In this document: one piece after another, positions 8,126 through 14,129 of the stretch
Layout: each line of letters begins with the position of its first letter
Position numbering within the stretch: position 1 is the stretch's first letter
Assembly (NCBI GenBank): GCA_964019335.1
Contig: OZ025724.1
Coordinates: 248,001-312,000, forward strand
DNA length: 64,000 nucleotides
Reading direction: 5' to 3'
DNA from: Diplonema japonicum
Lineage: Eukaryota > Protista > Euglenozoa: Diplonemea
Translations under genes and position numbers: made by a program
Notes under the pieces: generated by a model
Seen by the model: the letters and a program-made list of their open reading frames with translations, nothing else
Told to the model about the DNA's origin: nothing
The model's database searches: none

Positions 8126-8161
<36 letters not shown>

Positions 8162-8213
8162 AAAGTACAGGACAAGCCCCCCGCTAGAGGGCCGCCCTAT
8201 GGGAGGGGGGGGT

Positions 8214-11200
8214 CTATCTGTTAATACTCCCCTTCTGGAGCATTGCTTTCATCCCGATTGTGGCTGCGAGCGTCTTGCGGAGTCGTGTGATGCGATCCCG
8301 CTTGTAGGCGGCCTTCAAATCCATCAGCTTGTGAGGGATTTCACCCTTTTCTGCTCATCCGCTGGGAAGGGGCGTCGCTTCTTCCGTGCCCTGCACGCTG
8401 CGTTTATCTTTACGATTAGGGCCTTGATTCTGCGTGCCCTATCTTCCTGCAGGCCTCCTAATGATTTACCGGTCGTCCATTCGAAGTCAATGGCTAGCTC
8501 CACCGCCGACACCTCCGAGGCGGTGTCCTTCTCCACCCAGCGCAGCTGTGACAACCATTGTAGCAGCGGGTTCAGGTACTGGGACAGGACCCCACCCACT
8601 CCCTCGAGCTCGCCTGCTATCGGAACGGGGCATCTCTTTCCTACTACATTTCGTTCCCACGGTAGCGGCTGTGTGTTGACGTCCTCCTTCTGCACGAGCT
8701 CCACGTCCCGCTTCTCAACCACCACGGCCAAGTATCGTTGCAGTTTTTCCAGGTATGCAAAGGCATGTCCTCTCGGCAGTATTGCGTGTAGCTCAAGACA
8801 CAGGGGCCATCCCGTCCTGTCGCGCAGCGGTTCCAAACCGTCCTGTGCCAGCTCGTCCCGTGCGCAGGCACACTCGTAAAGCTGATGGCGGAGTAAGGTT
8901 ACCGTGTCCGGGTGTGGTGACTCACACAGGTCACACCTGAACCCTTGTGTGCGTGGTACTTCCGTCGTTGGGACGTGGTCTATGCTGTCCCCGTCTTCCT
9001 CGGTGCCATCTCCTTCTGGTGCCAGGGGGACGCTCCTTTGACTCGTACCTGCATGCGGGCTAAGGTAGGGGACCCCTCCGGCGATCACCCGTCTCAGGCC
9101 ATGAGAGCTGTTCCATGAGGGCTGTTGTCGTACTGTGCTTGGGCCTAAACCCGTGCTGTCTCGGCGTGATCCAACGTTCCTGCCAGTCAAGGACATCCTT
9201 CAGCCTCGTACACGCCCACAAGCGGTAGATGGTGCTGGTCACTGTGATGGGTCGGTGGTTCAGCGGTGCTGACCCTTCACCCTTTGGTATCAGTGACACC
9301 AGGGCTGTCGTGATCTGTCTCGGCCACTGGCCCGTCTCCTCAATCAGGTTGAAGAGGTCTGCGAAGGCCTTCAGGATGCTCACCGGGAGACGTTTCAGCT
9401 CACTCATTCGCCAGCCGTCTACGCCACAGGCTCCCTTCTCCGGCTTCTTTTTGACCACTTCTCTTAGCCGCTCTGCTGTGATCGGGGTCCGCGTCATTGG
9501 GGTTTTCTTGATTAAGTCCCTGTAGCGTTGCGAATCGTTCGTACTGCGGCTCGTCTTCTGGTGTCCGCGCAGAAAAGATGCCCGACCAAGCATCCCGCAT
9601 CACCTCGTCCATCTTCCGTAGGTTTGCGGTCACCCCGCCGTCTGCTGTCTCAACCACATCTGTCTTCTGGTTTGGGCGGTCTCTGACCCAGGCCGTGATG
9701 TGTCTGCGCTCCTTCCCAAGTCTGAGCGTATTGAACGTTCGTATGCTTTCGCCTGATGTTCTTGCGTTGTAGGAGCAGCTCCGATAACATTCCCTGGGCG
9801 TGATCTTCAGCTATTTCCAGCTCTCCCCTGATGCTATCAATACTCCCTGCCGCGTCGGTCTTGCAGGACTCGACCTTCAGCTCTTCCCCCAACGTTGTAA
9901 TGTTCCTGAGTGTGTTCCGTACCTCTACTGGGAGCGGCCCGCAGTGCCCGCCCTCATAGAGCTTTAACATTTGCTGTTTTGCGCTTCGGATTTTGAGCTT
10001 CAACTTCTCAAGTCGTTGTTGTCGATTTGTTGCCGCCCCAACTGTCGACTCCGTAGACCTCGCACTCAGCTCCGACTTCGTAGGCTCCCGAACCTTGCCT
10101 CTCCCGGTGTATACGCTGCGCACCGGACCCACGTATCCATGTAGTAGGTACTGCTCCGCGAGGTCTGCTATCTCCGAGAACGCTTCGGTGGGCTTCTGCG
10201 CCGTAATGAACTCACGGTATTTCGACTTCTGCATCAGTGTCTCCGCTACTCCGGTGGGTGCCCTCTTGGTCTTCGGTATCTCCTGCGGGACGGTGTATCT
10301 TAGGACTTCTTGTCGGAAGGCTGGGATGTTGAGTGTTACCGACAGGCATCGGTGGTCCGACCCGGAGATAGCCTCGTTTACTCCACAGTGTTCGAGCCCC
10401 TGGGCCGCGATGTTGTTCAACAGTACCCTATCCACCCGCGTACTGCAGTTGGTTCTGACAAGCGTGCTCTCTACCTGCACTCCATCCCTCCGAGCACAGA
10501 ACGCAGCGGCGTCTACCCAGTCCGTCTGTAGAGCCCTCCTTAGCGTGGCGGAACGGGTTTCGTCCGTGTTGAAGTCACCCATCACGGCCACCGGCACGTC
10601 TCCCAGCTCGAACTTGAGTCGGTGTAGTAGGTAATGGAGAAGCTCCTCACGGTACTTCGCCTTCGTCGGGTCTTGTCCTGAGTGGCAGTATACATTCACC
10701 AGATGAAGCCATCGCTTGTTCCCATCAAGTGAGATTTTCACGTGTGACCATCTGTCCTTGTGCGGCCCAGCCGTTTCACAGACCACCGCTGTCCGTGGTT
10801 TTTTCACAAAGGTTCCTAGTCCGCCCCGCTTCGCTATCGTCAGAGACGTGACACCCTTGGTCTCCCTCCCCGGCTGAGGTTTGCTCCAGAATCTGGTGTA
10901 TTGTTTGCCCCAAACATCATCTCTCAGCAGTGTTCAATCTCCATCTGAGTCTGTGCTGTGAGGGCAGTTTCTTGGATGCAGAATGCGTCCGGGAGGACAG
11001 TAGAGTACTCACCCAGCCGGTTGTTTAGTGCTGAGCCGTTGTGTGTGAAAATGGTGAAACTCTCTGGTCCTGGCTCTGGTCCGGGGTGGGGTTCGACACC
11101 TTGTTCGATGAGGCGTTCAAATTTCTTGTCAGATAGGTGTATCGGATTGTATTTGGATGGACGGGAAAGGGGGGGAGGGAATGGGTTTGAAGGGTGGGTT

Positions 11201-11220
11201 TGGGGGGAGTTCCCCTGTAG
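8214..11220 (-). pseudogene. Disrupted ORF2 (2A-like motif, APE endonuclease, partial RT, zinc knuckle, C-terminal domain) of element A
   Basis: Fragments 9650-10807, 9400-9657, 9060-9593 and 8324-9196 lie in different frames. Upstream hand translation gives ...RLIEQGVEPHPGPEPGPESFTIFTHNGSAL...FCIQETAL. Confidence 0.85.
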
Positions 11221-11262
11221 TCACTGCTCGCTTTGCTCGCATCACCCTATTGCAGTCTAATA

Positions 11263-13428
11263 TTATGCAGGACTGTGCTGGGTTGTTTTTTGTGATATTC
11301 CCGTTGCAGTAGTGGCACACCCCCTTCCAGTATGGTATGTCCCGTTGTAGACGTGGCATATGCCTTTGCCCAGGCAGTCGTTGATGTCGGTGCCCTCATC
11401 TAGGTCGATGTCGGTGTCATCGTCAGTCGGGGGGGGACCCAAGTCATCCTCCGTCTCCATGTCGTCGTTTTCTCCCTCCTCGGTTAGCGAACGGGGCTGG
11501 TCCTTGTCCAGTCTCGAGATCGTCGCCTCCGTGAGGGCTTTTATCTGCTCGGTGAGAGCTGCCATCTGGGCGCGCATCTGCTGGACCTCCCCTCGCAGCT
11601 GCGCGTTCTCTCTCCGCAGTTCGATCACTTCCGCAGATGGCTCGTCGTCTCTGCTCGGTTCCCCCGCCAGCTTGCGGATCGCATTTTCGATTGCTGTGAG
11701 GCGGTCTTCCACTCCCGGGGTACCTGATTTTCCCGTCGCTGTGGGCGCCTTCCCGGACTTCAGAGGGGCAGTCTTTTTCGGGGGAGCGGTCTTCTTCCCT
11801 GTAGCAGGTGGTTTGTGGCCGGGCTGGGTGGACCCCGTCACTGCGCCTAGGTAGGATTTGCCTGTGGCTGTGGTCCCTGTCTTCGGTCTTCCCCAGGACT
11901 GTGCAGTCGGTGTCTTTTTAGTGGGCGGGCCCCCCATGTCGGGTGCTATCCTGCAGTGGAGGATCAGCCCTGTCGGGGATGTGATTCTCAGCGTCGTGGT
12001 AGGGGGTTTGCCTCCCCGAATGTACCAGCACCTCCCGTCGTTGCTCCAGCCGCCGTGTAGAGGAACGGCATCCCATTTCATGGTCCGGAGTATCAGTTCC
12101 ACGTGCTCCACACCGCACTGTCCGTACAGGCCCGTCAGACGCCACCTCGGCTCCCCATGTTGTCCGCGCTGTCGTTCATCCTCGCCCAACACCTTGTCAA
12201 GGAGCGCGGTCTTCTCCCCCTCCGACGTCCTCACACCGAGGCGGCAGTCCGACTCACGAATCGCTAACCCCTGCTTTTCCGCTTCTGCCAATTCGAGCGC
12301 TTCCTTTAAAGTGGTTTCCTTCGGGAGCCAAGCGACGGGGGATCTCGGCACATCCTTCGGTCTAACGAAGATCCCTCCCCTTCCGGACGTGTTCACGAAT
12401 CTGTCGAGGCTGCTTTTCGGGACCGTCACCAGTACGTCTACCCTCGGGGTCGGACCCTCCACGATCTTGTCGATCCTGTGGATTGTCTTGCAGTTCAAGT
12501 CCCGGAGGAGCTTTCGGGGTTGGGAGGTTATATTCTCCCACGTCTGGGCCGAGGCGTGCGCTTTCGAGAAGATAATCGCGACCCGCGCGAATCTTGCCCC
12601 CAGGTTGATGTCCACTGTGTCACTTGATGTGCGCATGGCAATCCTCCCGCTCACTGCCAGTAGGAACATCTTCCTGTTCGTGAACTCTCCTTCCGCCTTG
12701 AGTACAACGTCGTACTCATCCCGTCCTGTGCCGCGGCGCTTCAGGATGAGCGCTTTGTTCCCGTCCCATGCCATCTTCTCGGCCTCCTTCACGTTCTCCT
12801 CGGTTGCGATGGCAACGCCGTCCTTTCCCGCCACCAGCTCATCCCACGTCACGAAGGGCTGGTCAAACTGCCCTTGCTCCAGGGACCAGCGTTTCGCTGC
12901 CTGCGGTTGTTTCTGCGGCGGTTTGCTGCTCGGCCCTCTCCAGGCTCTCGCCTCGCCGTCTGAGGTCGGGATGCCTACCCGTGGCAGCTTGAACTCCTGC
13001 ACTACTTTCTTCAGAACGTTCACGTTGAACGGTTCTGACGCGTTGAGGTAAGCCCGGCCGTCGAAGGCGACGTGGATGGGCAGCTTTTTGGACTCTCCCG
13101 AGATAGGGGAGACTGTGAGGGCGCCGTTTTCGACTGCCATTAAGCGGATGTCGATCTTCCATGCGCGGGCGGTGGCCTGGATGGTGACCAGGTCGGCGGC
13201 GGTGCCTTCCTTCGCGTGCTGGGTGCAGTAGGCATCGTAGTCCCCGGTGACGTTCACCCGGTATTCTTCGCTCCCTCGCAACTCCTGTACCATGCGGCGT
13301 CTAATGTCGCTCCCCTTCTTCCCCGTCTTCTCCCCGACCACTCCGTAGAAGGACTTCCCGTTCCCGTTCCCGTACGCCCTCCTGTGCGCCGTCATCCTGA
13401 AGCCCTTCATTGCTTTAAAGATGTCCAT
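11263..13428 (-). CDS. ORF1 of element A: degenerate OTU-like domain, central domain, coiled coil, acidic tail
   Basis: GNGKSFYGVV...IRRRMVQEL...EGTAADLVTIQATA...IHVAFDGRAY aligns by eye with the OTU of ORF1 at 34441-36843, but the catalytic Cys and His positions read Ser and Ala. SGRGGIFVRP...WLP...AL is shared with that ORF1. Confidence 0.75.
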   Translation of the reverse strand: MDIFKAMKGFRMTAHRRAYGNGNGKSFYGVVGEKTGKKGSDIRRRMVQELRGSEEYRVNVTGDYDAYCTQHAKEGTAADLVTIQATARAWKIDIRLMAVENGALTVSPISGESKKLPIHVAFDGRAYLNASEPFNVNVLKKVVQEFKLPRVGIPTSDGEARAWRGPSSKPPQKQPQAAKRWSLEQGQFDQPFVTWDELVAGKDGVAIATEENVKEAEKMAWDGNKALILKRRGTGRDEYDVVLKAEGEFTNRKMFLLAVSGRIAMRTSSDTVDINLGARFARVAIIFSKAHASAQTWENITSQPRKLLRDLNCKTIHRIDKIVEGPTPRVDVLVTVPKSSLDRFVNTSGRGGIFVRPKDVPRSPVAWLPKETTLKEALELAEAEKQGLAIRESDCRLGVRTSEGEKTALLDKVLGEDERQRGQHGEPRWRLTGLYGQCGVEHVELILRTMKWDAVPLHGGWSNDGRCWYIRGGKPPTTTLRITSPTGLILHCRIAPDMGGPPTKKTPTAQSWGRPKTGTTATGKSYLGAVTGSTQPGHKPPATGKKTAPPKKTAPLKSGKAPTATGKSGTPGVEDRLTAIENAIRKLAGEPSRDDEPSAEVIELRRENAQLRGEVQQMRAQMAALTEQIKALTEATISRLDKDQPRSLTEEGENDDMETEDDLGPPPTDDDTDIDLDEGTDINDCLGKGICHVYNGTYHTGRGCATTATGISQKTTQHSPA

Positions 13429-13537
13429 GGCTGATGCGTCTGGATCGCTGATGTTGATGTTTACGATGCAGATACTGATGTGATGCTTGCGTTCTCCTCT
13501 CCTTTCTTTTCCTTCACTCCTTTGCACTAATCCCGAA

Positions 13538-13660
13538 ACTTTTACACTTCTTAAACCTATGCACTTCCGTTAAACCTTACACTTCCGTTGAACTCCGTTA
13601 ACTTTTATACTTCCTTCAAACCTTTACACTTCTTTTAAACGTCTACACTTCCGTTGAACC
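13538..13660 (-). repeat. About six degenerate ~20-nt tandem repeats in the 5' UTR of element A
   Basis: Plus-strand unit resembling TTTACACTTCCGTTRAACC, repeated. Confidence 0.75.
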
Positions 13661-13744
13661 TTGATGTCGCGTTCTTTACTTCCAATATTTGTATTTTCTT
13701 TTCAAACCGTTACTGAGTGAAACTTTATTGGCACGGTCGGACAC

Positions 13745-13782
13745 CAATAAAGTACAGAAACTGTAGCTTTAGAATCGTTGGT
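13745..13782 (-). other. Genomic copy of the diplonemid-type spliced-leader exon (38 nt)
   Basis: Minus strand ACCAACGATTCTAAAGCTACAGTTTCTGTACTTTATTG; ends in the conserved euglenozoan SL core CAGTTTCTGTACTTTATTG and resembles the Diplonema SL as I recall it. Confidence 0.9.
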
Positions 13783-14129
13783 GGAAAAAAAAAAAAAAAA
13801 AAACAGGTAACAAACTAAGAGATCTTCCCCCACACACACATCAATGCCAGGTGGTTAGCAATAGCCCAGTACCCTATAAAGAGGCACGACAAAAAAAATC
13901 ATCATTTGGGCATGCAGGTTTTTTTTTTTTTTTTTTTTTTTTTTCTTTTTCCCTCCCCATATTTTTTAGGGGGGAAAAGGACGGCCTCTGACATCAGAAA
14001 TATGAAAGGGAGAGGAAGCAGGAAGGGGGGGGGGGGGGGGGGGAGAGCGAAAAAAAAGAAAAAAAGAGAGAGATGAGATAAAGGAGGTTCCTATTTTGGA
14101 ACGTCCTCTATTTCTTTCATTTCCGTGGA

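Follow-up and report, generated by a model that had tools for sequence, protein, structure and literature searches.

We find that a family of LINEs in the diplonemid Diplonema japonicum carries the host's 38-nt mRNA spliced leader (SL) as an inherited part of its own DNA, and that the 3' end of this leader pairs with downstream element sequence in a conserved RNA hairpin whose function is inferred from sequence alone. The finding comes from a 64,000-nt stretch of assembly GCA_964019335.1 (contig OZ025724.1, positions 248,001 to 312,000 of the forward strand; "the window"), in which an exact copy of the SL exon lies at the 5' end of a 5.6-kb APE/RT element, LINE A, and is followed twelve bases further on by a perfect 10-base complement of the last nine SL bases plus the first LINE base. 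The helix is kept in three lineages (A, B, and C; about 68 intact 5' ends), and SL sequence precedes the leader in all 53 copies of A and B and in 15 copies of C. An earlier note had described this arrangement, and its observation is correct in both coordinates and content. Its interpretation is only partly supported: the origin by trans-splicing and retro-copying fits our data, but the proposal that LINE A is trans-spliced anew in each cycle, and that the helix forms only when an SL has been attached, is not supported.

SL-tagged retrocopies in dinoflagellates (PMC5585692, PMC6050394), dispersed SL fragments in Diplonema papillatum (PMC10161547, supplement), SL-gene-specific retroelements, and the trypanosomatid Pr77 hallmark are already on record, whereas full-text literature searches returned no description of a LINE lineage with a fixed, heritable SL and a co-evolved junction hairpin.

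Organization of the LINE A 5' end and of the element

Read on the minus strand, an unrelated flank is followed by these features:

13783-13803 (minus): 5' junction, T19 (13803-13785) followed by CC (13784-13783)
13745-13782 (minus): resident copy of the 38-nt SL exon, lacking the first A of the AACCAACG start of the gene
13732-13744 (minus): 13-nt stretch beginning GT
13742-13753 (minus): hairpin 5' arm, SL nt 30-38 plus G, U, and G of the LINE, so that the SL|GU junction lies inside the stem
13734-13741 (minus): hairpin loop (8 nt)
13722-13733 (minus): hairpin 3' arm, containing the anti-SL decamer CCAATAAAGT (13731-13722)
13683-13710 (minus): second conserved leader box (ACGGTTTGAAAAG...), shared by lineages A and B
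13542-13652 (minus): 18-19-nt tandem repeats in the 5' UTR
11263-13527 (minus): ORF1, 754 aa, with a coiled-coil region
9650-10807 (minus): ORF fragment carrying the APE endonuclease domain
8126-8171 (minus): 3' end, the motif CCTGTACTTTGAG followed by a T33 tail, with no poly(A)
8159-13782 (minus): LINE A, window copy (5,624 nt)

The limits of the element were set by BLAST comparison with copies on C11 and C103 (our labels for sequences elsewhere in the assembly), which are 98-99% identical. The window copy is defective, lacking about 990 nt (including the RT core) and 70 nt relative to the 6.68-kb copy L072 (L numbers are our labels for individual loci). In L072, ORF1 encodes a 772-aa coiled-coil protein for which a homolog search found none, and it is followed by an APE endonuclease domain (PF03372, E = 3.7e-8; 1.5e-4 in the window copy) and a reverse transcriptase (PF00078, E = 2.1e-12), whose best PDB relatives are R2 and L1 ORF2p; other relatives of the RT were also found. 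Flanks differ at every copy, T-runs precede nearly all A and B copies, and the 3' end is a fixed motif ending CTGTACTTTGAG followed by T(3-33) rather than poly(A). An 11-nt target-site duplication is seen at the C11 copy, while at the other two copies examined the duplication is a T-run only. The element is APE-type, as the earlier note had stated, and inserts at T-runs anywhere. It is not inserted in an SL gene: the whole SL lies at its 5' end only, the 3' flank is a T-run plus unrelated DNA without SL gene remainder, and no SL-gene promoter lies upstream. These features distinguish it from CRE1/CRE2, SLACS, and CZAR of kinetoplastids and NeSL-1 of nematodes, which are likewise physically associated with SL sequence in trans-splicing organisms but encode a restriction-like endonuclease and insert at a fixed site inside SL RNA gene exons, so that SL gene halves flank them.

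The leader is not the SL RNA intron

The 3' 23-mer of the 38-nt block occurs 227 times in the 62.5-Mb genome, with 0 occurrences in the reversed control, and is joined to many different downstream sequences with unrelated upstream flanks. A search for an Sm-site-containing SL gene pattern found nothing, but genuine SL RNA genes were identified through their conserved upstream block next to a 5S gene: they lie on C15 (two copies, next to a 5S rRNA gene), on C4, and in L065 (loci L029, with two copies, L011, and L065). These genes share about 45 nt of upstream sequence, the exon, and a ~93-nt intron that starts GTACCCAATC and ends in a stem-loop and a T-run terminator. The earlier note had named identity of the sequence after the exon with this intron as grounds for rejecting its reading. 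Global alignment shows no detectable similarity between the two (z about 0 against shuffles, p = 0.45-0.76), and an Rfam scan of 13300-14100 at E <= 10 gave only chance hits, with no SL RNA, ribozyme, or snRNA family matched.

An SL RNA-derived leader, either an orphan SL gene beside the LINE or an SL RNA::LINE chimera made by RT template switching whose hairpin is SL RNA structure by descent, is thus very unlikely. Such chimeras do exist here, the leader does start with GU, and the genuine intron contains CAATAAA, complementary to the SL tail. However, the real chimeras carry about 85-93 nt of intron, the LINE A leader is present in all copies with unrelated flanks and without the SL-gene promoter, and the CAATAAA is not used in the minimum-energy fold of the genuine SL RNA.

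The spliced leader is fixed in lineages A, B, and C

We tallied 5' ends by lineage; the counts for lineages B and C, for the sister family F6, and in part for sub-lineage A5 rest on pattern counts only. Of 39 copies of the lineage A core (GTGTCCGACCGTGCC), 38 are preceded by the last six bases of the SL and 1 by a point-mutated SL. All 25 copies of the downstream leader box of A and B are SL-capped, 14 of 14 copies of the lineage B core (GTATCGACCGTGCC) are SL-linked, and the lineage C core (GTCGCTCCCCGTGG) gave 15 SL-linked copies. No copy has a polypyrimidine-AG in front of the leader.

Two sister LINE families in the same window behave differently. Their 5' ends read T16 CAG|GGGCTGG (21972) and T-run AAACAG|GGAACACTGG (36884), with no SL, and SL-capped copies of them exist elsewhere, joined at that AG; one of these, L220, is 100% identical to the SL-less copy of the window over the aligned 89 nt of leader. 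Among 13 copies of the F6 sub-family, 1 is SL-capped and 1 is an SL RNA chimera. These families show the process that the earlier note had envisaged, in which a built-in acceptor behind the target T-run is used for trans-splicing and the spliced RNA is occasionally retro-copied to the cap, as a live process in this genome.

In the corresponding model for LINE A, SL-less master copies are transcribed, trans-spliced at an AG in front of GTGTCC in every cycle and copied to the cap, and the helix, forming only on spliced RNA, senses or marks it. The behavior of the sister families, the perfect SL of all full-SL lineages, and signatures of de novo capping (a missing 5' A and CC stutter) speak for this model. 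We nevertheless consider it unlikely, because none of the 53 A and B leaders has an acceptor, because several young sub-families, with copies up to 98-99% identical, would each need a master and none is present, and because truncated SLs are inherited.

Truncated spliced leaders are inherited

Where SL-bearing copies have been re-spliced, the products are recognizable: either an SL followed by a 22- or 16-nt relict that starts just after an SL-internal AG (L045 and L048; also L017, L026, and L203 in another family), or an SL joined further downstream at an AG (L034 and L233). These amount to a few per cent of copies.

Two sub-lineages instead carry an SL cut back to about its last 13 nt. In A5 (14 copies) only 2 have a full SL and at least 7 start (T)nCTGTAC, and in lineage C 12 of 14 start at about TCTGTAC and only 2 of 14-15 extend further, whereas the other A and B sub-families carry full SLs. 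A truncation point that is lineage-specific and shared by independent insertions is heritable, and what is retained is the hairpin arm plus 4 nt. In the C11 copy the 11-nt target-site duplication encloses TGG T9 C plus the SL, showing that, at least there, the copied RNA or cDNA carried a T-run 5' of the SL.

The junction helix is conserved at the RNA level

The 39-nt hairpin folds at -11.6 kcal/mol (z = -4.1, with 0 of 200 shuffles as good) and contains ten Watson-Crick pairs and two G-U pairs on the loop side. The longest contiguous Watson-Crick complement between the SL and the first 45 nt downstream is 9 nt (10 with the junction base) in A and 8 (9) in B, and it is 9 with wobble pairs in C, compared with a maximum of 7 in 76 diplonemid mRNA leaders taken from metatranscriptome contigs and at most 7 in eleven other SL-capped families; shuffles give P(>=9) = 0.003. 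The possibility that all families with an SL|GT junction carry an anti-SL is thereby rejected, as only the A/B/C lineage, in which the SL is fixed, exceeds the controls. The helix is AU-rich, and an energy-based test of SL-leader pairing was not discriminating: the duplex energy (-11.0) is unexceptional against control leaders (mean -12.5), and in the 123-nt context the minimum-energy fold uses a competing structure. The case for function therefore rests on conservation rather than on thermodynamics.

In an alignment of 16 leaders, 93% of cells pair in register, against 25-55% when the partner is slid. Changes facing the invariant SL are UA to UG (4 times) and GC to GU, and those on the LINE-encoded pairs are GU to AU (4 times). 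Folding each lineage separately gives 11, 12, and 13 pairs, in which the third pair is G.U, A-U, or C-G and the fourth is U.G, U.G, or G.U; one C copy changes G.U to A-U. These inner-pair differences are two-sided compensations, but the alignment scored no two-sided change because lineage C is shifted by one column, and the SL side cannot vary, so the formal covariation statistics are weak. The formal shuffle control was uninformative. The wobble pairs indicate sense-strand RNA and not a DNA palindrome. Meanwhile, the 10-14 nt immediately after the helix differ completely between sub-families. Each variant that lost the helix (L016, L214, L034, and L233) was seen once, in a sample of copies rather than a full census. 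The longer helix of L224 is not independent evidence, since it arises from an internal deletion joined at a 4-nt AAGT microhomology.

A chance complementarity preserved only among young relatives, without function, would be compatible with the ordinary duplex energy, the competing fold, and the uninformative shuffle control. We regard it as very unlikely given the rarity of a 9-mer match, the persistence of the helix beside a fully diverged block, the wobble-preserving and compensatory changes between lineages, and the retention of exactly the arm in truncated lineages.

Origin and possible roles of the resident leader

We favor, with moderate confidence, the following explanation. Like the sister LINEs, the ancestor would have begun with a target T-run, then an AG acceptor, then G, and would have been trans-spliced there and reverse-transcribed up to the cap, writing the host SL into DNA. 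Our analysis establishes directly that the SL-bearing form has replaced all others in this superfamily, that the SL is inherited, that two sub-lineages propagate with an SL reduced to its last ~13 nt, and that the last 9 nt of the SL, with G+1, U+2, and N+3 of the LINE, pair with the anti-SL in a conserved 11-14-bp RNA hairpin that buries the SL|GU junction; the capture by retro-copying, the function of the hairpin, and any promoter activity of the leader are inferences from sequence. In this view the hairpin is a cis-acting 5'-terminal stem-loop needed for propagation, a counterpart of the 5' protein-binding RNA of R2 or of Pr77, which would act as a 5'-end or RNP signal and would also hide the junction and the adjacent AAAG in its 3' arm from the splicing machinery, rather than sensing fresh trans-splicing. 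Retention of the arm in the truncated lineages points to the helix, and not the first 25 nt of the SL, as the indispensable piece. Those 25 nt are nonetheless perfectly conserved in A1-A4 and B while dispensable in A5 and C, which simple neutral inheritance does not explain and which suggests either DNA-level constraint, such as a promoter, or periodic refreshing of the SL.

Three routes may be envisaged by which SL-bearing copies regain their 5' end: an internal promoter firing at SL nt 1; read-through RNA joined at the upstream U-run by microhomology, its cDNA A-run annealing to the target T-run, which is supported by the C11 copy and the truncated lineages; or re-splicing inside the resident SL followed by collapse of the tandem repeat. 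A tentative extension of the first route is that the resident SL and GU-hairpin leader form a self-contained SL RNA mimic, in which the SL exon DNA would serve as an intragenic Pol II promoter and initiator, perhaps using the SL-gene transcription factors, and the LINE would make capped, SL-bearing mRNAs, born "pre-spliced," in an organism where every other mRNA needs trans-splicing. The hairpin would then mimic the paired 5' splice-site region of SL RNA, or hold the perfect SL|GU donor inactive or regulate its use, much as retroviral leaders regulate their major splice donor. This possibility would explain the perfect conservation of all 38 SL nt, the precise 5' ends, the absence of SL-less masters, and the rarity of relict forms; GU after the SL is invariant although U to C would strengthen the helix, and the 3' end is a T-run like the SL gene terminator. 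Against it, genuine SL genes have a conserved upstream promoter that the LINE lacks, SL-capped copies of sister families do not take over, and A5 and C spread without the 5' 25 nt of the SL.

A precedent is the Pr77 hallmark of trypanosomatid ingi/L1Tc LINEs (PMC8190864, PMC1874656, PMC3185411), an internal Pol II promoter bound by the SL-gene factors TBP and SNAP50 that yields unspliced, translatable RNAs (PMC8190864). The resemblance is that of a conserved module of about 80-120 nt at the extreme 5' end of euglenozoan APE LINEs, shared by diverged sub-families, with a link to the SL-gene transcription machinery (for LINE A, by inference only) and a bearing on how a LINE makes a defined 5' end in a polycistronic, trans-splicing host. 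Pr77, a shared 77-nt 5' signature with an HDV-like ribozyme fold, contains no SL sequence and gives unspliced RNAs without an SL, whereas no Rfam ribozyme family matched at E <= 10 in the LINE A 5' region. Splice-donor stem-loops in retroviral leaders, such as the HIV-1 SD hairpin, and the R2 5' RNA are also 5'-leader hairpins that contain a GU donor or serve as a 5' RNP signal, but they are analogies without homology, and there is as yet no evidence that SL|GU is used as a donor here.

Nearly all nuclear mRNAs of Euglenozoa obtain their 5' end by SL trans-splicing of polycistronic transcripts, and how an autonomous LINE makes a defined, translatable, full-length RNA in such a host is known only for Pr77. 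This genome shows what may be a second solution in diplonemids, one of the most abundant marine protist groups, with the ordinary state (a T-run plus built-in AG acceptor, with occasional SL-capped daughters) side by side with a derived state in which the SL has become heritable element sequence and half of a conserved stem-loop. This provides a natural experiment on which parts of the SL matter outside trans-splicing, how reverse transcriptases behave at the hypermodified SL cap, and whether transposons can domesticate host RNA-processing signals. It also matters for annotation, because genomic SL hits in diplonemids are mostly retroelement 5' ends and not SL genes.

Probable footprints of reverse transcription at the spliced-leader cap

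Capture by retro-copying is supported by relict SLs at SL-internal AGs, by alternative junctions at AG (L034 and L233), and by the 5' ends themselves. Almost all SL-capped copies of all families start ACCAACG, one A short of the gene, as reported for D. papillatum cDNA and attributed there to cap-4-type modification (PMC10161547, supplement). An extra CC or CCA before the SL recurs in unrelated families and flanks, which we infer to be stutter on the AACCAAC repeat during reverse transcription at the SL 5' end.

Relict SLs in dinoflagellate retrogenes likewise reflect SLs written into DNA by reverse transcription of trans-spliced RNA, with truncated relicts at SL-internal AGs after re-splicing. 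Here, however, the carrier is an autonomous LINE lineage in which every copy has SL sequence, the SL is inherited rather than re-acquired, relicts are rare, and part of the SL has been recruited into a conserved hairpin; in LINE A and B, 0 of 53 copies represent an SL-less source with an AG acceptor at the junction, as is found in the sister families. The D. papillatum supplement called the fragments collateral damage of retrotransposon activity and described no element.

Whole SL RNA is fused to the F6 LINE in L004 and to the F3 LINE in L219, showing, as in U6/L1-type chimeric retrocopies made by RT template switching, that the local RT switches to small nuclear RNAs at template 5' ends; the LINE A leader, which carries only the exon joined to unrelated sequence, is not such a chimera. 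The same RT also makes tandem partial 5' ends (L024, L229, and L058).

SL RNA genes and their chimeras with LINEs

We identified genuine SL RNA genes at locus L029 (two genes on the minus strand of contig C15 of the genome assembly, G000:C15:777580-780223), at L011/L073 (contig C4, near 650090), and at L065, all with a conserved upstream block of ~45 nt, the exon, an intron of ~93 nt, and a T-run terminator. Only a handful of these genes are assembled, with one pair lying beside a 5S rRNA gene, and the SL depth in public sequencing runs is far higher than that of the flanks, suggesting that a large array may be unassembled. SL RNA genes of other euglenozoans with the same SL 3' half were found on metagenome contigs (loci L117 and L107, L139, L140); their introns start GTATGGAAACT or GTACACTAAC and pair with the middle of the SL rather than with its tail. 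At two further loci of the genome, L004 (C2, near 150572) and L219 (C30, near 484559), whole SL RNA (the exon plus most of the intron) is fused head-to-tail to the 5' end of a LINE, of the F6 and F3 families, respectively; these resemble U6/L1-type template-switch chimeras made with SL RNA.

SL capping in other families

Two other LINE families have their 5' ends in the window, as follows.
21972 (-): LINE 5' end, a T-run followed by CAG and then G.
36884 (-): LINE 5' end, a T-run followed by AAACAG and then G.
This arrangement is a built-in trans-splice acceptor that uses the target T-run as its pyrimidine tract, and the SL-capped retrocopies of these families (loci L215, L220, and L216) are joined there, although L220 is one G short of the expected junction.

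Genome-wide, family F3 (leader containing GATAACATGGAAATATAAG...) has 366 copies, of which only about ten are SL-capped. Family F1 (SL|GTCGTTCGTG...) is, after LINE A, a second family in which essentially every copy is SL-capped (72 versus 73 hits). Family F1 is found at many contig ends (e.g., loci L008, L012, L195, and L243), being concentrated near them and interspersed with 8-nt repeats, (CCCGCAAA)n, that look telomeric; it shows several alternative SL junctions and tandem partial 5' ends, and has no unusual complement to the SL.

Across all SL-capped loci, the base following a genomic SL is G in nearly all retro-families, but in only about 18% of 118 diplonemid mRNA leaders, and GT follows the SL in the two families where the SL is fixed. 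At the other side of the SL, retrocopies at L014, L040, L048, L053, and many other loci start ACCAACG, one A short of the gene, and often carry an extra CC, CCA, or repeated AACC, which looks like a footprint of RT stalling and slipping at the modified SL cap.

Further features of LINE A

Two further features were found in the window copy of LINE A.
13542-13652 (-): 18-19-nt tandem repeats (about six units) in the 5' UTR, between the conserved leader and ORF1.
8159-8171 (-): 3' terminus, containing CTGTACTTT directly before the T tail.
The nine bases of the latter motif, which is also present at loci L015, L021, L071, and L072, are identical to the SL's CTGTACTTT and could pair with part of the anti-SL. 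Finally, in the copy at L224 (G000:C32:438100-438950), the SL plus hairpin is joined through a 4-nt AAGT microhomology to the APE region, about 3.1 kb downstream, with all of ORF1 deleted.
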